Origin: Anthoceros angustus
Lineage: Eukaryota; Plantae; Anthocerotophyta
Assembly (NCBI GenBank): GCA_010909165.1
Contig: MU008203.1
Span: forward strand, 124,001 to 188,000
Direction of reading: 5' to 3'
DNA: 64,000 nt
Positions 40,108 to 59,403 of the stretch are shown one piece after another. The position numbers and the translations under genes were made by a program. The notes beneath the pieces are model-generated. The model was given only the letters and a program-made list of their open reading frames with translations. It searched no databases and was not told the origin of the DNA. Positions within the stretch are counted from its first letter, which is position 1. The number at the start of each line of letters is the position of its first letter.

Positions 40108-42971
40108 ATCACGCTAAGGATAACAAATCCATGGAGCTGCTCAGCTCTTTGTTAGCGAGCTCCTCTTTGAGCGACCGGGCCAGTTCCTTTCTCAGAGCCT
40201 CCCTTTTCCTGTTGGCCTGCAAAAGCGAAGTCGGCGGTGTCGGGAGGCCGGAATGTGGAGGCTAGGTGGAAAGGGGTGATGGGCTGTGAAAGCACTTGTT
40301 ACCTCTATGTCTTCAGGGCAAGGTTTGGCAAATAGTTTTGTGCGGTGCATAGATGGCGTGAGCCGCAAGTTGTCCTTGTCGCCTTCCAGGCCAGCCACCT
40401 TCTTCTCTCTCATGGCTGCCTCATCAAATTCTTACTATCACTTTACATGGACTCTCTCAAGACAAGCAATCCATTCCACTATGGGAAGCTATGCTTCAGA
40501 TTAGAATTTACCTTTTTTCTGGGCAATAATTCTATCCCTCTGTTTCTTCAGATATTGCCGACGAGTTATAACTCTGAGACTGTTCTCCTGCATGCATTAC
40601 AGATTAACTTATTAGGTTGTTATCTTTTTACTGTAGATTAAGATAATTCAAAGGGTGTATATTATTACCTGTGACTCTATATCTTGTGTAAGCCAGGGAT
40701 ATTCTATTGTTGTACTTGCAGCACTGTGCATACCCACAAAATTGATTGTGAACACAGACTTTAAGTATTGAACCATGACTAAATCATGAAGTAAGTGTCA
40801 AAATGAGTACAAGAATGTACACTTGATAAGCAATTTTACTTTGCTTCAATTGTTGTGATATCATGGGCTTCTTCAATAAGCTCTATATTTTCTCTTCGAC
40901 AACAAAATTCTCCATTGCCACACAATCCGGGCTCCTCTCGGCCACAATCCCTATTGTACACAAAATGCAGCATGAGTGGATTTGATAGGTATCAGTTGAA
41001 AGAAACCTCATATAATCGAGATCATTTTACTTTATCTTTCTCCTTGTAAGTTGTTCTGGAGCTTCAATGATGTTGTCTGGTTCTTTTTCTAGTTCTTCGG
41101 CTTTTTCATCAATTTCTTCAAGTTCTGTTTGTTCAGCACAATAATCTGTGCTGAATTTGTTAACTGTAGCCTTACACCCCATCCTAGGTGGGGTGGAGTT
41201 TTCTTCTACATCAGGATCAATGACAATTGTTAGTAGTTTTTTGTTTGATTTCAATTGAGGTTCGTTTGGACTCAACTCCCTTGAGATGTCACCTAAACTC
41301 TTAGGCCTCACTTCTATGTTCCTATAAGTAGTTATAGGAATGATTGGTTCAGATCTATTTGATTCGAGTAGGCATTGTCCTTCGTTTAGATCACATGAAC
41401 AATATTCTAATGCACATCCTTCGGCCATACAATTCGTTGAAAATTTTCTACATCGAATACCATTCATGCAACATTTATTGTTCCCATGTGGAGCGATTAT
41501 GGTATTTTGTCCCTGTTGCGAACTAGAAGTGGATCCACTCACTTCTTGGCCTAACTTTTTACGTTCCTCGTCACTTGCAATTGACCTATATTTTGAAATT
41601 GTAATTATGTCACAGAAAATGGTAATATGCTATGGTTTAAATAAAATACTTGGACTCTTATGCAACTTACAAATTGATTGCTGTCTCTAATTGAGCTTGT
41701 TCTGCATCTTTTACCTAGAGATCACCCATTACAAGAAGTTAAAATAATTTATAAATAATTCATTGAGTTTTTGATAGATTTCTAGTCTATGAAGATATCT
41801 CACAAACCTTATTTTGCTCTTCAAATGTGCGAAGAGACAAATAGATAGCTTTATCAAATTCACTTTTTTGGGCTTCACTCAATTCTACATAGTTTTACAA
41901 TAAAACCCTGTGTTCAAAGTTAGTTCAAGAAATAAGGTTGTACATGTAGAAAAATGCTATGATCCGCTTGCAAGAAAATTTCTTATCCTACCCCGATGCA
42001 AATCCTTTTCAAATAAATATTCCTCCTTCGATAGACGTAAAACCTCTTCCAACTCCCTAGCATGTAATCGTGGATTTTGCAAAGCATGGATGGTTGCGAT
42101 TGCATTATCAATTGCGTACTTTGATCTATCTCCATGTAATCGCTCAAGTTGTTCAAGAGCTAATACTTGATTTAAAAGTTGAGCATTTCTTTTTATCATC
42201 ATTTCCTATTGTGAGCCATATGTCATTATGCAATTGAGATTATGTGTGAAATGTACATTCAGTGTCAGAATTAAATATTGTAGTACCTTAAATAAAACAA
42301 AATCTTCCACTGTTAGAATGGATGTTACAACTATACTATAAAAATCCAGCTGTAATTGTCTGCATGTACAAATTTGGTTATTCTTGCACATTGCATTTTC
42401 TTCATTTTAAAACAAAACTCACGAAGTTATTTTTAGACAAGAGGAGACATTACCTTGCAAGCATTTCAACAAATTGATGTATTGGAACTCCTAAATGAGT
42501 AACAAAGTCACATATGAGGCCATCAACTAACTGCTTGAAGTTTTCATGAGCCTAACCAAAAACAAAAGCATATGCACATTGTGTGAAGATATTTCTGACC
42601 AGTCCATTTATCCAAATACTTGCGATACATTTGAGAACGACATAATATGAAATGGACGGATGAAAAATAAGAAAGCTGATACTTACAATATTATACTCAG
42701 GCTTGTTTTCTTCAGAACTATCAAACATGCTGCAATTTTCGTCTATGAAATTTAAGAGTGGTAATGAATATGTAGGACTATGCAAGAATTTATGCACTGC
42801 AATTTCCATGGATTGTGTATTTTCATCATTTTGTAAGGCTCTCTCTATATCTTTATCCATATTATTGGGATTCTTACCGGAAGCAACTAGCTCACGCTTT
42901 AAGGCTAGAGATGGATCTAAAAGCATTATGCTTTTCAGATAATAAGCAACCCTAGAGAGAGAACATTGCAT
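40108..42971 (-). CDS. CFAP36: Cilia- and flagella-associated protein 36-like (BART/ARL2BP domain plus coiled coil), multi-exon
   Basis: Spliced exons give KFLHSPTYSLPLLNFIDENCSMFDSSEENKPEYNI|AHENFKQLVDGLICDFVTHLGV..|SILTVEDFVLFK|EMMIKRNAQL..ELEEVLRLSKEEY, and C-terminal ALRKELARSLKEELANK. Both match the recalled CFAP36 layout. Confidence 0.8.
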
Positions 42972-43759
42972 TCCCTACATTTTCGGATAAATATAAATGC
43001 TACTGATTAACCTCATTAGGTGTCAAGGAGCCCATTTGTCCCCCCAAGAGTGGTGAGTGGTGCGCTCAAGGCAGCACATGGGTGCTTTTGCCTGGACATG
43101 GGCGCGGTTTGCTCAGATGGCCAGTCGACATCAGCCCTTGCCACGACAACAGGGTGTTTTTCTCCGGTGCCACCAACCGGTTGCCTTCCCCGACCACCAC
43201 CTATCTGTGAGACTCGGGAAGGACATCATCTGAAACACGAAAGACCTTCCGAGCAGAATCTCCTACTCTCGACACACCCAGTTCCTCTCCAGCAGTAACT
43301 CTCCGGTACCATTGAGTTGTTGTCGGTTTCATCAAATCCGATCGTGACAAGCTCGTCCAGTCTGCAAGCCGTGAACGGAACTGCTACATCTTCAGCAGCT
43401 GTCTGACCCCAGAATTGTGATAGCGATGGCCTGGCTGAGCCCAGTGATTGGCAGTTCACACTACTCGGCAATTCTCCATAGAGCGACTGCCGTGATGCTG
43501 CAGCTCGTTTCTCCTTGGGACGCCTGGGTGGATAACGTAGCAACCACCCGAGCTGGGCCTCGCGGCTCTGGCCTGAACACGGAGGAAGGTGCGACCTCTA
43601 GTGCTCGCGCTCCCCACCCGCTCAAATAGAGACAACCTAGGGTTTACGCCATCTCCCCAGCCGTGAACTTGACAAGGAGAAAAAAAACTTTAAGAAGTGC
43701 ATTCCCTATCATACAAGATTGATTTACAGCCTACAAAGCCTTTATTAGAAATATGGTTT

Positions 43760-44830
43760 TTAATCCTCCAAACCTTTATTAGGCCACATATTAGGACAGA
43801 TGTCTTGAGGACCATTACCCAGAGGGAAAAACTCAAAGGTTAGGGCACATTGAGTTGCAGCCAATTTCCCCATCATCTTCATAGGACAGTACTTGTTCAA
43901 AAGTTTGATTCTCACATAAGTTAGACATCCATAGCAATCATCCTTTACGGTAGGGTAATATATATCACTGAGACCAAAACAATGAGCAGTAATTTGCATG
44001 AAAGACGTTTGAGATACATAGCGCACTGGCCATGCTTGAGATGCTAACTCAATTGCTTCTTGAGTATTAGATTTTATTTCCTGCCATGTGTACAATAAAA
44101 CAGACTTCTCACTGCATTCATGTTGATAGAGACTACGTCCTAGCCTTGGATTTTCTATTGGTGCTACAACTTTGGAAGAATGAAATTGGAAAACACATAT
44201 CAGAATTAAACAACAATAAAAATACGAAACTTTTGGGTAACAATGATCCATCAAATCCGTCACTTGGTGTCTTATCCACACTATTGTGGATCCACACTTA
44301 TCCACACTATATGGATAAATTGAAAAAAATAAAAATACACGGATTAAATAAAATGAACAGAAACGTTATTTTTTTTATATCAATAGACAAACATAATGAT
44401 CGCAAAATGATGTGGAGTTATGTTGATATATATTAATGAGTTTTTTTATTCCTCTAATAAAGCATAAAGATACAAAGTTAGTTGTCTGAAATATTCTTAA
44501 AAAAGTAAAATATTATCTTACAACAACTATGACCAGGTATATTCTTTAAGTACTTTTCAATAAATGACTACAATATTGAATGAAGTAAGTTTTAAATAAG
44601 TTTGCATATAATGCAACATTATTTGGATAAGATAACAAATTGCTGTACACCAGAGTTAATGAGGATGGCATTGCTGCTTGGGATCTTGCCATATGTTCTA
44701 TGAAAAACCTAAAGATCTCCCTTTATAATATTTTATATCTCACCAGACTGAGTTCTCTTATGCCAAATTGGATGTTGGAAGGCCTTTGATACCAGATGCG
44801 AGAGAAGGAGTTTCATGACATCTAGATATA
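43760..44830 (-). other. Unidentified AT-rich probable coding fragments
   Basis: 181-codon ORF 43760-44305 and short exon-like pieces with GT donors near 44600-44850; no family recognised. Confidence 0.25.
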
Positions 44831-45809
44831 TTATATCCCGGTTGCTACCTTTAACTCACCTAGAAAGCGCCTGGGTGTGTGGAACTTGTGATACCGGGAA
44901 ATTTGGTGGCTGGAACCAGGCATGCTGCTTGAAACATCTTCCATCCACGCTTGATCCAATTTTGTAGCACCATGATGGCCACGAAACGTGAGCAGAATGG
45001 CGCGAGAGTGACAACAAAACCCATCGCCCCGCCAATGAGCACTGCCGGAAGTGCCAGGCCAAGAGACTCTCCTGTTGCGCCCGGGGAGACAGCCTGCTGG
45101 AGGACAGCAAGTGTTGTTTCACAGGGGCATGCCGAGGAGGGGGTTATCGGCGAGCAGCCGGCAGATAGGGGTAGTCCACATAGCCATGGTTGCCTCCATA
45201 TCTGGAAACAGGGAAGGTTTTCAGGTCGATCCTTACTGCACACATTGTCGGGCATGGTATAAGATTGCGTGCGACATCTACATAAACGACTTTGTTGCGA
45301 GACGGAAAGAACTTGTCTGGTACGGGGAGACTAGGTGGCTTCCTCACAAGTCTACGGCAAAAACAGGAGAAGTAAGATTTGCGAAGTAAAAAGTCGAGCG
45401 TTCCCAACACGACAAGAGATAGTTGGATGAGCAGACTTTGCCGTGACATAAAATACGAAACACAACCATAGATACGGTTGTTGGTGAGCTGCATGCCCTG
45501 CAAGTGGTGATGTTGGCAATCGCATTGGGAGCCACACCAGCCAGTACAATGTTCCGCAAATTCAAGCTTCGCCGAAATGGTATTGCACCCAAGGAATTCG
45601 GGATGCGGCCCGTCAGCTGATCGTTCCCCAGAGCAAGTTGTTCCAGAGCGGCATATTTCCTAACCTGTCCGGTATGGCCCTTGTGAGTTTGTTGTCGGAT
45701 GAAAATCGCACCTTGGGGACTGAGCCCAGCGAGTCTGGATCAGACTCGCTGTCCGGTATCACTCGTTGGCAGATTGATTCCTTTGCTAAGTTGCATCTTC
45801 GAAGCCCTT

Positions 45810-47134
45810 TCATACCGGGTGTGGGGCACAGATTTTCAGAACCAGAAATGCCTCATGCAGCTGGAGAAACATCGTTGCTTCCACCTGCCGGGCAGGTGCA
45901 CTATCCGTGTACTTGATATGGAGCCAGTCTTCAAGACGTACTCGGTAAGAATCCCTTTGATCAGGACGGCAAGTGTCCCCGGGGTGGGGCCGGTGCACTA
46001 CTGTACATCTGCCAGTACGAGGGTCCACAACTTTCCTCTTCGACCCATCCAGATTCTCAATCCGACATCCCAGTCCAGTCAGGAATTGTACCAGCTTGCT
46101 CCATTTGAGAGTGCCCTTGACTTTCCTGCATGGAATGTCTCGAATTGATATATCAGCCTTCTTAACTGGTCGAAAAACAGGAGGCACTTCATCACATTTT
46201 GATTCCTCGCCACCACCGATGGAAGCAGGCGTAAATTTTGATTCCTCACCCCTGATGGACGCAGGTGTAGACACCTGTGAACAACTATCTCCACCACCAC
46301 TGGCAGGTGTAGATACCTTTGCACAACTATCTGCACCGATGAAAGTAGTTGTAGATACCTCCGAACTTTCATCTGTTACCCCAAAGTCTGATATTTCGGA
46401 GTGTTCCCGTGTCTTGATCTTGAACAGGAAGCGGTACATATTTTTCTACCCTTCCATCCCCGACCTCCCAAAACAAACCTGGGTCCACAGCTGTTACTTT
46501 GGCAACAGTCCGATCTTCCACTGTATCAGCCTGTACCCTGTGTTGGACAGCCAGGGCCTTTTTTTCCTTCTTAGCAACGTCCTTTCTATGTTGGTACCGT
46601 CGAACCGCTTGCAAAGGCAGTAGAGAGTATTCATGCTTCTTGAACTCTGGGCGGATGATTCCGTGATACAGAAGGGTATATTTGGTCTTGAAAGCCTCAA
46701 ACATCTCAGCAGTCAATTCCTTGGATTCGGAAGCCAGCAGCGGAAGCCGCATGAAGGAGGGCAGATTTGCCCGACGAATCTGTCTCTCTTACCAGCGAGG
46801 TCTCCAGCAAGAGACCTTTCGTGGGAAGCGAAACCGGCTTGCCTTTGCCCAACAAGACTTCAAGATCATCCGAGGTGGATACCACCACTCCAGAAGTTGG
46901 ATCAAATTTGTATCTCCGAATAGCAGCCTTGATCTCCTTCTCGTTAGCCACAAAAAGTCCCGCATGAAGTAGCACTTCCATAACCCTGAACCTGGTGCTC
47001 AGCTCGTCAATTACTGCTATGACTTCCACCTGCACATCCTCCATCTGCACCGTGAACTCACTGGCTCGGCGGAAGTCTGAAAACAACCCTTCCTCGATCG
47101 GTAAGGGTAAAATGGAAAGGAGTGCTTGTTCTGA
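45810..47134 (-). pseudogene. Frameshifted gene with an ankyrin-like segment and a C-terminal HicA-toxin-like domain (45915-46109)
   Basis: Three overlapping minus-strand ORFs (46706-47191, 46369-46752, 45810-46439). Last has LKWSKLVQFLTGLGCRIENLDGSKRKVVDPRTGRCTVVHRPHPGDTCRPDQRDSYRVRLEDWLHI; first has TDSSGKSALLHAAS. Confidence 0.65.
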
Positions 47135-47519
47135 GCCGAAGTTCTTGGTCAGCTGGAAAGATGACCAACTACGGCAGAGCCTGCAGCTCATCCAGCTTCC
47201 CTATGGTTGCAGTTGTTAGATGAAAGGTTTAGAGAATTGAGGTCAAGCCAGATCACCTAAAGCAGATGGTATCGCACCACTAAAACCATTGCTGGACAGG
47301 TCGAAATACTTGGTGCTTGGTTGAACTACCTCCTCCAGGTTGCCTTTCCAAATGAGCTCAGACTAAGAGGGACATACCCAGACGGGGAAACATTTAAGTC
47401 ACATTCAATGAAACCTCGGAGCGATGACAGGTTCTGATGAATGTGTGCTGAAAAGCTGTTAGCTAGGTTTAGGAAAGAGATTAAAACAGGAGGTTATGGT
47501 GTCAAGATGGTACCAGACA

Positions 47520-47635
47520 GAAATCATGAGACCCGAATCTAAGGGATTGGCAGCTAAAATGTTCAAGGCTTTGTAGAAAAAGTATACCTCTCTTTATCAT
47601 GGAATCATCCGCCCAGAGTTCAAGAAGCTCATGTA
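47520..47635 (+). repeat. Inverted, diverged copy of 46625-46730
   Basis: Encodes PESKGLAAKMFKAL*KKYTSLYHGIIRPEFKK versus SESKELTAEMFEAFKTKYTLLYHGIIRPEFKK on the opposite strand. Confidence 0.85.
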
Positions 47636-48494
47636 TGTGCAACTGAACGACAATGCGTGGACAGGCTCCATTCCAGACTACCCCTTCACTTCCCCTGGCT
47701 GGCTGATCATCCCCAAGCTTGTTGTGCTGTGATTGGCTGATCGCGATCCTTGTTGTCGAATCGTGAGACCCGATTGAGCCCGAACACGGGCTTGAATGCA
47801 AGGCCTGCACATCGATACCCGAAGACGACCCGCATACCCATGTCGTCACGAAGAACGACCGTCCTCCGCTTTTGGACGGGGAGTCCACAGCGTGGAGAGA
47901 CCGACCACCGACCTCTAATGATCGTGGTCCGCTTTATCCATGCATAAACATGCCCCATGCCCAACCGCGCGCTTGCGCCTCGTCCTCACCGTGCGATCCC
48001 GTTCTAGCAAAAAGTCTCTCCACTGCTGAGGAAGTGGCGCGAGCAGGCGGCAGGACGGCTGAGTCGGCCTAAATGGCGAAGAGCTCATGAGTTGGACCTA
48101 TCCACCATGGGTTTAAATCCCATACCTCACCTTAAGGTTCTAAGGGATGGGTTTAATATATAATGAATATTGGATTAACTTATTTATAAAACTTTAGAGA
48201 ATTTCGAAGTTAAGCCACCCTGCATGGATTCAAATTGTGTGATTCATATTTTCCTTGAGAAATATTTACCTTCTCAATAAATGAAGAACCATTCAAAATA
48301 TAATTGAGATTTATTTTCCTCCTATCTTCTTGACAAATGAAGAACCATATATTTTAAGTTTGAGAAAGAAAACTGGCTTCTGATGTAGGATCTTTTTTGT
48401 CTCGCCCACAAAAAGGACCCTTGTTAAAAGGTCCTTTGGGACTGCACGAAATATAATCTTTACTCGTAATAAAGCAATGAAGCACTGGTGAAAG

Positions 48495-48895
48495 GCTCTC
48501 ACAAAATATGATTTCTGCTCGCAATGAAGTACGTTGTAAGGTTTTCTAAGGGCTCTACTAGGTTGGTGCAAAGCTCTCACGAAATATGATTTCTACTCGC
48601 AATGAAGTACGTTGTGAGGCTTTCTAAGGGCTCTACTAAGTTATCCTTCCGCAAAGCTCTCACGAAATATGATTTTTACTCGCAATGAAGTACGTTGTGA
48701 GGCTTTCTAAGGGCTCTACTAGGTTGGTGCAAAGCTCTCACGAAATATGATTTCTACTAGCGGTAATCGTTGTGAGGCTTTCTAAGGGCTCTACTAAGTT
48801 ATCCTTCCGCAAAGCTCTCACGAAATATGATTTTTACTCGCAATGAAGTACGTTGTGAGGCTTTCTAAGGGCTCTACTAGGTTATCCCTCCGCTC
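48495..48895. repeat. ~80-bp tandem repeat x5 with ~161-bp dimeric higher order (gctctcacgaaatatgatttctactcgcaatgaagtacgttgtgaggctttctaagggctctacta...)
   Basis: Unit starts at ~48495, 48573, 48656, 48734, 48814. Confidence 0.92.
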
Positions 48896-49135
48896 TTATG
48901 AGATCCATTAGGGTCCTTTCGATTAAGTGACATGCAAATGTTCAATCTATTCACAATTTAGAAAACATTTGAGTGCTACCTAGGTACTAAAAATATCTAA
49001 ACTTGCATTGCATAATGATGTTATTCGAGAAAGGGATATTTTATTGAAGTGAAAAAATGATGGGAAGAGCCCATCCAAGAGGGGACAACCAAAGGGGACC
49101 CCGAGGGTCGAGGTGGAGAGGAGCAACTGAGCTCC

Positions 49136-50135
49136 CTACCTAAAGTCACCTGCTGCACCCACAATGTCATATGCAGGAAGAAGAAATGGCCTGCAAACCA
49201 CGGAGGTAGAGGAAGATGCATCACCTACTGTCGCCGCATTGTGGAGGATGGCCGTTGAGAGCGCCCGTTGAAAGGCAATTAAAACCCATTGTCGGAAGTA
49301 TGCTGTGAAGTAGGAGAGGGTCAACCCCGTACCGTGCCTGCGCACATGGTAAGATTTGGCACAGGACTTGACAAATTTGTCAAAGTCCTCATCCATTACC
49401 ATACGTTTCTAGTGCAAGCGGAATAAAGAGGTGGCCCGCTTGCATCCTGCTATATTTGCGGACCTTGAGATGGCCCGCTTGCATCCTGCTATATTTGTGG
49501 ACCTTGAGATGGCCCGCTTGCATCTTGCTACATTTGCGGAGCTTGAGAGCCGTTGTTCCGGCAGCAGCCCAACCTGGCCAGTTAGTGATGACCTGAGCGA
49601 AGATGTGTCACGTGAAGGATCAATAACCACTACATCCATCTGCCACCGAAACCTGGTTGCTACGGACAAGGTACAGGTCAGCCCTGAGTGAACGACATGT
49701 ACGGAGAGTATACCTCGCTCCCTCTAGGCCTTGTAGCCGCTTTCGCGAGTGATGGCGAACATGATATCGCGGATGGCATCGTGGGTGGCAATACGATGAC
49801 CATGGGGACAACGAGCAAGGTGTATTCCAGAATCATCGAGGGTAGAGCTACACTCGCAAGTAAGGAGCGAAGAAGCCATAGGCTGGAGCAAGCCAAGACG
49901 GAATCGCATCGCAGTGAAGGTGGTTGGTGCGATATGAAACCCCGTATGCATGGATGTGAAACCCCGTATGCATGGGCGAGCCAATAGCCAAGCACCTGCA
50001 CCCTTCCCAAAACAAGAGCGAGCCGGGCTCTTGTGGTCTTGGGATGGAGGGGTCCAGTAGGACAAACAGGAAAGCTTGGCCGGGTTGCTTCTCGAATGGG
50101 ATGGAGGTCCAGATGGGACAACAGAAAGCTTGGCG
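49136..50135 (-). mobile_element. 3' fragment of a CRE/R2-type non-LTR retrotransposon (CCHC knuckle plus restriction-like endonuclease region), degenerate
   Basis: RARSCFGKGAGAWLLARP..FTAMRFRLGLLQP..CECSSTLDDSGIHLARCPHGHRIATHDAIRD; RADL..DVVVIDPSR; YFRQWVLIAFQRALSTAI. Confidence 0.75.
49428..49540. repeat. 36-bp tandem repeat x3 inside the LINE fragment (gagatggcccgcttgcatcctgctatatttgcggacctt)
   Basis: Direct inspection. Confidence 0.88.
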
Positions 50136-50139
50136 AATT

Positions 50140-50295
50140 GTACTGAGCAGGATGCTGCAACCCCGAAACCAAGGATGCCTGCAACCCCCAAAAACCAGGA
50201 TGCCTGCAACCCGCTGAAACCAGGGATGCCTGCAACCCCCTAAAACCAGGGATGCCTGCAACCCCCTAAAACCAGGGATGCCCTGCAACCCCCTA
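50140..50295. repeat. ~24-bp tandem repeat x6 (gatgcctgcaacccccaaaaaccagg)
   Basis: Direct inspection. Confidence 0.88.
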
Positions 50296-50313
50296 TAACC
50301 AGCGATGATAAAT

Positions 50314-50456
50314 GTCATGATGTTATTCTTATGGGTACACAGTTGCCTATTCACTCATTGTCATGATGATATTATTCTTATGGGTACACAGTTGCCTATT
50401 CACTCATTGTCATGATGATGTTATTCTTATGGGTACACAGTTGCCGATTCACTCAG
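50314..50456. repeat. ~47-bp tandem repeat x3 (tcatgatgttattcttatgggtacacagttgcctattcactcattg)
   Basis: Direct inspection. Confidence 0.9.
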
Positions 50457-50849
50457 TTATCTGCCTTTCAAGCTCTTGAGGTTCGGGTCGGGCTCATGGG
50501 AGCCAGCCGTATGGTGTGGTCGTACGAAGTACATAACTGCCTTTCGAGCTCGTGAGGTTTGGGTCGGGCTCATGGGCCTGCGTCTCAATCTCCGAGGCAA
50601 TCACTGCTTCGCGCGTGTGAAGGCTGGCGTGGCATGCCATGCCTCGCCCATCACGATGCTCTCTCATCGTGGTATACTTTAAACGCGCGCACCATGTACA
50701 GGTCCATACAGGATGTCACTGCCGTATTTTGCCCAGCACGGCACAACCCCTAGTATACGCACCCACCACAACGAGGTTGTGATGTAAACCAACCATGCTT
50801 GATTTTAGAACCGTGCGCGAGTATGAACTGAGCGCGGGTGTCTTAAACA

Positions 50850-53409: not shown

Positions 53410-53600
53410 CTAAGGGCTGAAGAATTTTGCAATCGAGGGCTGAAAAATTTTGCAATCGAGGGCTGAAAAATTTTGCAATCGAGGGCTGAAAAATTTTGCA
53501 ATCGAGGGCTAAGAATTTTGCAATCGAGGCTAAGAATTTTGCAATCGAGGCTGAGGAATTGCAATCGAGGGCTGAGGAATTGCAATCGAGTGAGGCTGCA
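53410..53600. repeat. ~20-22-bp tandem repeat x~9 (gggctgaaaaattttgcaatcga), inside the MULE
   Basis: Direct inspection. Confidence 0.9.
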
Positions 53601-57900: not shown

Positions 57901-59403
57901 GCTGGGTTTGCACAGCAAGGACTCGGCCAAGAGGCTCTTGCTTTGTATGGACAAATGGAGGAGGAGGGCCTAATTTTGCCCGATCATGTTACTTTTGCTT
58001 GCCTTCTGAAGGCCTGTGCAAGCACTGGTGGCTTACAGACGGGCAGGCAGCTGCACTCACAGATTGTGGAAAGAGGACTGCTGGATAACGTAGTGTTGGG
58101 CAACTCCCTGGTGGACATGTATGCAAAATGTGGTGAGCTGGAAGATGCACGCCAGGTTTTTGACAGCTTGACATCAAAGGATGTGGTGACGTGGAATGCC
58201 CTGATAGCTGGGTATGCACAGCAAGGACTCGGCCAAGATGCGCTTGTTGTGTACGGACAAATGGAGCAGGAGGGTCTGATTTTGGCTAACCACGTTACTT
58301 TTGCTTGCCTTCTGAAGGCCTGTGGGATCACTGGTGCCTTACAGAAGGGCAGGCAGCTGCACTCACAGATTGTGGAAAGAGGACTGCTGGATACTGTACT
58401 GGTGGGCAACGGCCTGGTGGATATGTATGCTAAGTGTGGTGAACTGAAAGCTGCACGCCAGGTTTTTGACAGCTTGGCCACAAAGGATGTGGTGACTTGG
58501 AATGCCCTGATATCCGGGTATGGTGCTAATGATGATGGTCACAGAGCACTAACTTGTTTTGAGGAGATGTTAGTTGCTGGTGTTCAGCCTGATGGTGCTA
58601 CTTTCACTTGCCTTCTAGTAGCATGCAGTCATGAGGGACTGGTCCAAGAGGGTCGCCAGCACTTTGATTCCATGACTGAACAGCACGGCATCAAACCTAC
58701 TGTTGAGCATTACAATAGCATGATTGATCTTCTTGGGCGTGCAGGCCATTTGGACGAGGCAGAGAAGGTGCTATTATTATATGAGGGCCAAAATAATGTT
58801 GTGGGCTTGACGTCTTTGTTAAATGCGTGCAAAAGTCACGGGGATGTGGAGAGGGCGATGTGGTGTTTTAAAAACATTGTTAAGCTGGAACCTCAAAACG
58901 CATCTGCGCATGTGCTCATGGCCAATGCCTACGCAGATGCAGGTAGGTGGACCGATGTAGACAGGATTGAAACTCAGAGAAAGGCAGCTGGAGCTAACAA
59001 GAAACCGGCCATGGCGAGTATTGAGGTGGAAAAGGAGGTACATACGTTTCTGGTTGGAGAAAAAAGAGAGGATATTGCGGTTACGGTAGAGAGCACGAAT
59101 GCACGTCTGAAGCAGCAAGGAGGCCACGTACCCCACACAAATTTGGTGTTGAAGCCATTGTGTGAGAAGGAAAAGGAAGATGCGCTTTGTGGGCATGCTG
59201 AGAAGCTAGCTCTGGCGTTTGGTCTCTTGAACACTCCGAGCGGGACTCCTCTGGTGGTAACGAAGAATCTACGCATGTGCAGTGACTGCCACAGTTCCAC
59301 GGAGGTCATGTCAAGGCTTGAACAGAGAAACATTGTTGTAAGGGATGGGTACCGTGTGCATCGATTCACTGCTGGTTCTTGCAGTTGCAAGGGTCGACCC
59401 TGA
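54985..59403 (+). CDS. PLS-class PPR with an N-terminal OSB-type PDF motif and a C-terminal DYW:KP ('GRP') domain; frameshifts confined to 56580-57010; true start may be ATG 54888
   Basis: PDF motif LWQQFFLDPSMWWDNRRDKKSSRSPDFRRKCSGEVLWL; 306-bp P-L-S triplets; E1/E2; KKPAMASIEV..HVPHTNLV..LCGHAEKLALAFGLLNTPSGTPLVVTKNLRMCSDCHS..RVHRFTAGSCSCKGRP*. Confidence 0.9.

Follow-up and report, generated by a model that had tools for sequence, protein, structure and literature searches.

The window analysed here is a stretch of 64,000 nucleotides from the hornwort Anthoceros angustus. On its minus strand, positions 45888-47134 most probably (we put this at roughly 0.8) hold a degenerate pseudogene copy of a gene without introns whose protein joins a helical body to a C-terminal domain resembling the toxin HicA; what the intact members of this family do we can only infer. 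HicA proteins are small bacterial or archaeal toxins that are restrained by a partner, HicB. A full-length gene would have stood at this place in a common ancestor, and in this lineage about 260 N-terminal codons would have been lost when the locus was rearranged, an event that left short inverted pieces of the gene behind. An internal deletion, two small frameshifting deletions and subsequent sequence drift would also have contributed to the present state of the copy.

Given the loss of the front, the internal deletion and the two frameshifts, the window copy cannot make the family protein, and most likely it does nothing. That a full gene once stood here is argued from a contig of a related organism (organism C below), as it shares the 3' flank and runs into the N-terminal part.

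Three frames, three breaks and a lost front

The fern member of the family, a Pteridium aquilinum transcript (P0001), was compared with the window by tblastn. Collinear similarity extends over fern residues ~260-674 but is spread over three frames of the minus strand, with a summed E of 2e-99: frame -1 at 47113-46787 (residues 294-402), frame -2 at 46782-46414 (residues 406-539, 57 % identity) and frame -3 at 46307-45888 (residues 551-674). The similarity takes in the helical body, the linker motifs and the C-terminal domain, and the window copy has no single uninterrupted full-length frame. The sequence-only reading had implied an intact gene; instead the copy is truncated at the 5' end and carries three further lesions that break the frame.

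Read from its 5' side, the copy opens with a short piece in frame -2 at 47088-47134, corresponding to fern residues ~260-275 and holding the FPFYP motif. Homology stops here, at the truncation; sensitive tblastn places the piece at 47130-47095 in frame -2, where SFPFYP is identical in 6/6 letters to the family protein P0023. Residues 1 to ~260 were found nowhere in the 64-kb window by tblastn. At 47087, between the FPFYP motif and an 'LF.DF' motif, lies what we call break 3, a frame-shifting internal deletion of ~27 codons, and no counterpart of fern residues ~276-302 was found in the window by sensitive tblastn. The helical-body segment follows in frame -1 at 46787-47086 (fern residues ~303-402).

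At break 1 (46780-46786) the frame changes from -1 to -2, and 2 letters are missing relative to a second related organism, organism B. The middle segment then runs in frame -2 over 46418-46782. Break 2, at 46412-46420, changes the frame from -2 to -3 inside a conserved 'VP.PV-REKIKTR' motif, with 5 letters missing relative to organism B. A variable linker in frame -3 (46167-46415) corresponds to the disordered fern residues 494-576. The sequence-only reading had rightly called this linker repeat-rich: TRF finds two copies of a 36-nt unit in tandem at 46196-46269. The HicA-like domain of 93 residues ends the copy, in frame -3 at 45888-46166. Conserved positions have drifted as well, as in 'RDIPC', which the relatives keep as 'RDILW'; among the listed differences from the relatives there are 21 non-synonymous and 12 synonymous changes.

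The three open reading frames (ORFs) could also belong, as exons, to an intact plant gene that is spliced and made up of an ankyrin-like part, the linker and the HicA domain. None of the three segments contains a stop, and by eye one can pick out GT...AG pairs close to the places where the frame changes. We nevertheless regard splicing as very improbable. The protein alignment crosses both frame changes with the tblastn matches abutting at 46787/46782, which leaves no space for an intron, and the DNA of a relative carries 2 and 5 extra letters at just these points. Homologous genes are single uninterrupted, intronless ORFs both in a Logan contig, where the gene lies beside a pentatricopeptide repeat (PPR) gene (L001), and on a Ceratodon chromosome (L002). 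The candidate GT-AG introns that we drew by eye were rejected, one of them because it would excise the conserved 'LFWEVGDG..EKYVP' block.

The ankyrin-like upstream part that had been proposed disappears in the same comparison. Its peptide, TDSSGKSALLHAAS, is present in the letters, but it is an out-of-frame (-1) reading just past break 1, thus a frameshift artefact. In the correct frame (-2) the same stretch aligns with a conserved region of the family, '..RR.N.PSFM' or '..RRKN.ASFM'. Further, no ankyrin repeat was matched by Pfam in the ORF at 46706-47191.

Public contigs were then compared with the window over 45400-47700: one of the source organism (X1), one of organism B (X2, 90-95 % alike) and one of organism C (X10, <90 % alike). 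The source contig runs as a single piece across 45400-47683, with 1 substitution and 11 single-letter gaps relative to the window. The contig of organism B has 2 extra letters behind 46780, 5 behind 46417 and 83 between 47086 and 47088, and each of these insertions restores the continuous reading frame of the family. Organism C has 67 letters between 47086 and 47088; for both relatives the letter counts at this place were taken from record coordinates. The contig of organism C covers 45400-47134, including the 3' flank at 45400-45800, and has one more 36-nt linker unit than the window. Both relatives depart from the window at 47134 and continue for ~800-930 nt with the N-terminal PEYP motif of the family. 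The contig of organism C may be RNA: its length of 2889 nt would suit a full-gene mRNA, the run type being a guess.

The source contig bears on the suspicion that the small frameshifts are assembly errors, which would leave a 5'-truncated open gene, or a 209-residue ORF (45810-46439) expressed as a free HicA-like protein. Eleven single-letter gaps set against one substitution are typical of a technology artefact, and the 209-residue ORF is open, has an ATG and contains the whole domain. However, around break 1 the bins of the source contig are free of gaps, and the missing stretches of 2, 5 and ~82 letters are unlike homopolymer slips. The 5' truncation and the inverted scraps are structural, conserved residues have drifted, and a run of RNA that is possibly from the same sample gave no match. 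We consider this explanation improbable. As an observation on its own, the imbalance between gaps and substitutions points to a sequencing-technology artefact on one of the two sides, which may bear on frame calls at other loci of the genome.

Several points weigh against reading the locus as a pseudogene. The source contig lacks 11 letters of the window at places that are not listed exactly, and two of these fall in the bin of break 2, where the depth dips; break 2 is thus based on the assembly and on the comparison with organism B. The contig of organism B has a 1-letter gap of its own, at 46188. All three frame segments are free of stops, and a truncated product may be made from the ORF at 45810-46439 with its ATG and complete domain. 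The one possible same-sample RNA run was without a match over 45400-47700. Finally, the function proposed for the intact members is pure conjecture, and their helical body matches no known fold.

Two further gaps of the source contig lie in the bin of the H-R-P-H-P-G codons, where the window matches the family consensus perfectly; since the window keeps the consensus there, the gaps would seem to be under-calls on the side of the source contig. Short overlapping contigs of organism B suggest several copies, and because of these and the gap at 46188 we do not claim that the genes of the relatives are intact.

A contaminant of bacterial or fungal origin joined into the plant assembly has next to nothing to recommend it, apart from the fact that the nearest non-eukaryotic relatives of the domain are bacterial. 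One contig of the source organism spans the locus, homologous copies at ~85-95 % identity exist in related organisms, the closest proteins are from plants, and PPR genes and remnants of leucine-rich repeats (LRRs) surround it. The locus is plant nuclear DNA, as the sequence-only reading had supposed.

The HicA-like domain and its bacterial relatives

The sequence-only reading had singled out a 65-residue segment at 45915-46109 (minus strand), inside the 209-residue ORF at 45810-46439, for its motif order W..L..FL..LG..IE...GS.R...V.HRPHPG...R..L..W. This motif is far beyond chance, given the Pfam and phmmer matches. Pfam finds HicA_toxin (PF07927) at residues 113-159 of the ORF with an E of 9.1e-6 and 26.1 bits, just below the curated cut-off of 27 bits; homologues score 17-23 bits against the same family, and an NCBIfam scan of the ORF gave no match. 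An exhaustive phmmer search with the ORF through 1.84 billion representative proteins gave 13 matches, the best with E from 1.7e-41 to 1e-29.

For the domain alignment we took the 93 residues of the window together with 13 eukaryotic and 3 bacterial relatives. The profile of the 14 eukaryotic domains matches that of bacterial HicA proteins with G-S-R in place of G-S-H in hhalign (98.3 % probability, E 2e-14, 75 columns), and the match takes in an extra N-terminal helix. No chain in the PDB was matched by sequence, either by the eukaryotic domain profile or by one member of the bacterial subfamily.

The predicted structure points the same way. The AlphaFold (AF2) model of the 93 residues has a predicted local distance difference test (pLDDT) of 82.5 and a predicted TM-score (pTM) of 0.72. 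After the extra N-terminal helix it shows a helix at 22-31, strands at 35-38, 43-48 and 53-58, and a helix at 68-81, that is the alpha-beta-beta-beta-alpha fold of HicA, which resembles the double-stranded RNA-binding domain (dsRBD). The same fold is found in the solved canonical toxins of B. pseudomallei (6G26), E. coli (6HPB), S. pneumoniae (5YRZ), Y. pestis (4P78) and T. thermophilus (1WHZ), although none of these chains matches the window domain by sequence.

When the model was searched against the PDB by Foldseek, ranks 1-4 were all HicA (6G26_E, 1WHZ, 6HPB_A and 6G26_F) with probabilities of 0.85-0.96; the E-values of ~0.2 are as expected for a domain this small. In an independent structural search of 48,161 PDB representatives the top five were again all HicA, with Z scores of 6.5 (1WHZ), 6.0 (6G26), 5.5 (5YRZ), 5.0 (4P78) and 4.5 (6HPB) and a root-mean-square deviation of 2.4-2.7 over 52-68 residues, compared with Z <=4.1 for unrelated folds. 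The best match in the ESM Atlas is a bacterial cluster named 'HicA family toxin' (TM 0.82/0.84, 89 residues). Taken by sequence profile and by fold, homology of the domain to bacterial HicA is well supported.

We recovered the G-S-R proteins by searching prokaryote genomes for two short peptide patterns that came from the two bacterial phmmer matches. This gave 13 loci. Five of the six HicA-like proteins scanned from these loci pass the Pfam cut-off, with 30-40 bits, and the protein of the sixth (L013) scores 19.8 bits. At three loci (L003, L004 and L007) the next gene is HicB by Pfam, with 65-77 bits, and at L003 it overlaps the HicA gene. The bacterial subfamily with G-S-R for G-S-H together with F-H-R-P-H-P that the sequence-only reading had named was thus recovered; its genes lie before HicB genes, and the window domain belongs specifically with it. 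The subfamily is compact, and its loci L003-L011 come from Sulfuricella, Nitrospirales, Burkholderia, Aurantimonas and Oxalobacter.

Bacterial proteins of this type, for example MBR7069719.1 of Oxalobacter sp., share with the eukaryotic domain the fold, the extra N-terminal helix with its conserved Trp, and the motifs G-S-[RK] and H-[RE]-P-H-P. They differ in that they are stand-alone proteins of 84-95 residues paired with a HicB gene, whereas the eukaryotic domain ends a 700-residue protein without HicB. Further, Lys is commoner than Arg at G-S-[RK] in the eukaryotic domain, in contrast to the Arg of the bacterial subfamily. The stand-alone size of ~55-100 residues does not apply to the eukaryotic domain, which forms the C-terminal end of proteins of 629-820 residues.

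The HicA toxins that have been studied depend on one histidine for their toxicity or their RNase activity (PMC11594946), namely His24 in B. pseudomallei, His28 in Y. pestis HicA3 and His36 in S. pneumoniae. Its position, two after the conserved Gly (G-x-H), is occupied by Lys in the window (G-S-K) and by Lys or Arg across the family, and the canonical His is absent from the nearest bacterial subfamily (GSR) as well. In the structural alignment to 6G26_E the ungapped offset of G41-S42-K43 sets K43 on His24 of the B. pseudomallei toxin. In the eukaryotic domains P60 and H61 never vary, and H58 hardly does. As the bacterial GSR proteins have kept the HicB partner although the His is absent, the gene order suggests that they may remain toxic by some other route.

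The absence of a HicB partner, noted from the sequence, held up in every search that we made. No neighbouring ORF was HicB by Pfam, and hhalign of the whole-family profile against HicB reached 0.2 %, which gives no sign of a HicB fused within the family. On the 64-kb window a tblastn search for HicB gave a single weak match at 58726-58995 (plus strand; E 6e-4, 30 % over 93 residues), which lies inside a PPR ORF and is taken as spurious, a composition effect of an Ala-rich stretch.

A plant and chytrid protein family

Members of the family were found in a fern, in mosses and liverworts and in a chytrid, and they can be aligned along their whole length. In general they have ~690-820 residues in three parts: the helical body, a disordered Lys-rich linker and the HicA-like domain at the C-terminus. 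The domain closes the fern transcript (688 residues), two proteins of the moss Ceratodon purpureus (KAG0628316, 690 residues; M758_10G019400, 739 residues), two of the liverwort Marchantia paleacea (KAG6547971, 800 residues; Mapa_006348, 715 residues), two of Riccia sorocarpa (629 and 754 residues, among them KAL3688555) and one of the chytrid Nowakowskiella sp. (KAJ3128943, 473 residues). Further members are present in several unnamed assemblies; four of the members were added by a follow-up search. Word-indexed protein searches with the family alignment and with one member (P0008) gave almost nothing new and are uninformative on the range of the family.

That the gene belongs to a family, as had been proposed, is thus borne out by collinear homologues in all these groups. 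The window copy shares their architecture, with 47-59 % identity to the fern protein over residues ~294-674. The named plant and chytrid proteins are complete ORFs of 473-800 residues, whereas the window copy is frameshifted and without the first ~260 codons.

In the model of the full-length fern protein (pLDDT 68.9) the helical body occupies residues ~60-490, the disordered Lys-rich linker 494-576 and the HicA-like domain 580-672. For the helical body, no Pfam family was matched; Foldseek with the full-length model returned generic long-helix rows only and no solved structure.

A maximum-likelihood tree splits the 11 plant rows from the rows of chytrid and metagenome origin with 100/100 support. 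Read through with an X at each break, the window copy pairs in it with the fern transcript, also at 100/100 and with 54 % identity, and not with the moss or liverwort proteins. This pairing may reflect an old paralogy, or the origin of the transcript may be doubtful.

Ascomycete clusters of similar length (700-800 residues) have a language-model feature similarity of 0.91-0.94 to a moss protein (P0003); one cluster is named 'Ipa protein' and another carries PF07927 in 26 % of its members. They are a lead only, and the phmmer search with the ORF of the window gave none of these proteins. Automatic Pfam labels are already present on a few family members, and no paper on eukaryotic HicA-domain proteins was found in the literature searched. 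The family is a conserved, so far undescribed type of protein that ends in a domain of the HicA fold.

Because the whole 700-residue architecture is present in fern, mosses, liverworts and chytrid, any transfer from bacteria would be ancient. Nothing indicates the recent horizontal acquisition, or the carriage by a mobile element, that the sequence-only reading had considered.

Rearranged flanks and the meaning of the family

The flanks of the copy hold small pieces of the same gene in the opposite orientation. At the truncation breakpoint, a 21-nt remnant of the N-terminal part lies inverted at 47157-47177 (plus strand), with exact inverted matches of 20-21 nt in the contigs of organisms B and C; the contig ends adjoining these matches read P-E-Y-P-A-G-L-A-K-I, that is the N-terminal PEYP motif of the family. 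The scrap starts 22 nt past the truncation point. This suggests that the truncation came about by an inversion or a template-switch rearrangement, not by a simple deletion.

A second piece, at 47533-47628 (plus strand), is an inverted and diverged duplicate of 46635-46730 (fern residues 432-462). The diverged paralogous fragment that had been noticed nearby is therefore present, at 82 % complementarity, but it is inverted and contains an in-frame stop codon. Along 47535-47700 (plus strand) the inverted fragment '..YHGIIRPEFKK' passes unbroken into an LRR-type motif, 'LMYVQLNDNAWTGSIPDY' (at 47628), so that this stretch forms a second joint of family debris and LRR debris, in the opposite orientation.

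LRR-like sequence is found on both sides of the copy. The 3' flank at 45440-45800 (minus strand) holds degenerate LRR-like repeats in several frames, detected by a motif scan and shared by organism C. In the 5' flank at 47230-47330 (minus strand) three-frame translation and the motif scan show 'DLSSNGFSGAIPSALGDL', an LRR-like remnant interrupted by stops and by changes of frame. The scan gave 6 matches in 42000-50000, compared with 0.4 in shuffles. Pfam found no LRR in the flank ORFs, and the LRR reading is based on the scan and on reading by eye.

These remnants, which have the same orientation on both sides, the inverted scraps and the adjoining tandem-repeat-rich DNA would fit a fragment that a transposon (Pack-MULE or Helitron) captured and moved, or else a domain that became part of an LRR receptor gene. 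We give this little credence. The contig of organism C, with its shared 3' flank at 45400-45800 and its full N-terminal part, favours decay in place; a repeat search found no terminal inverted repeats bracketing the fragment, and the LRR pieces are themselves frameshifted and not recognised by Pfam.

PPR genes flank the locus in the window. Synteny through the PPR gene beside the homologue in the Logan contig was uninformative, with an identity of 38-42 % that is the generic level among PPR genes. Just upstream lie tandem arrays that are unrelated to each other: ~137 nt x4 at 48449-48904, 39 nt x3 at 49428-49548, 26 nt x5 at 50160-50309, 49 nt x3 at 50317-50463 and 23 nt in at least 4 copies at 53413-53527.

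For the intact members, we slightly favour a role in which the domain would bind RNA and perhaps cleave it, with the linker tying it to the helical body; being rich in Lys, the linker may also act as a nuclear signal. Since the canonical His is replaced by Lys or Arg, nuclease chemistry, if there is any, would have to fall to different residues, and the nearly invariant H-x-P-H that closes strand 3 would be one candidate. A bolder version is tentative and rather unlikely: a GSR-type HicA domain would have been taken up long ago and retained, in fungi and non-seed land plants, as the last part of a large helical protein and without any antitoxin. Intact members would then bind RNA or cut it under control, the helical body being their built-in regulator, and would serve in defence, conflict or cell death; the domain ORF of the window may still act. 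If true, the family would descend from a toxin-antitoxin system, as a single-chain form of it in eukaryotes.

Less weight falls on the locus itself, a decayed copy that records the loss of a gene and a local rearrangement. What it leads to is the family, whose intact genes make it possible to test what a toxin domain does once a eukaryotic protein has adopted it.

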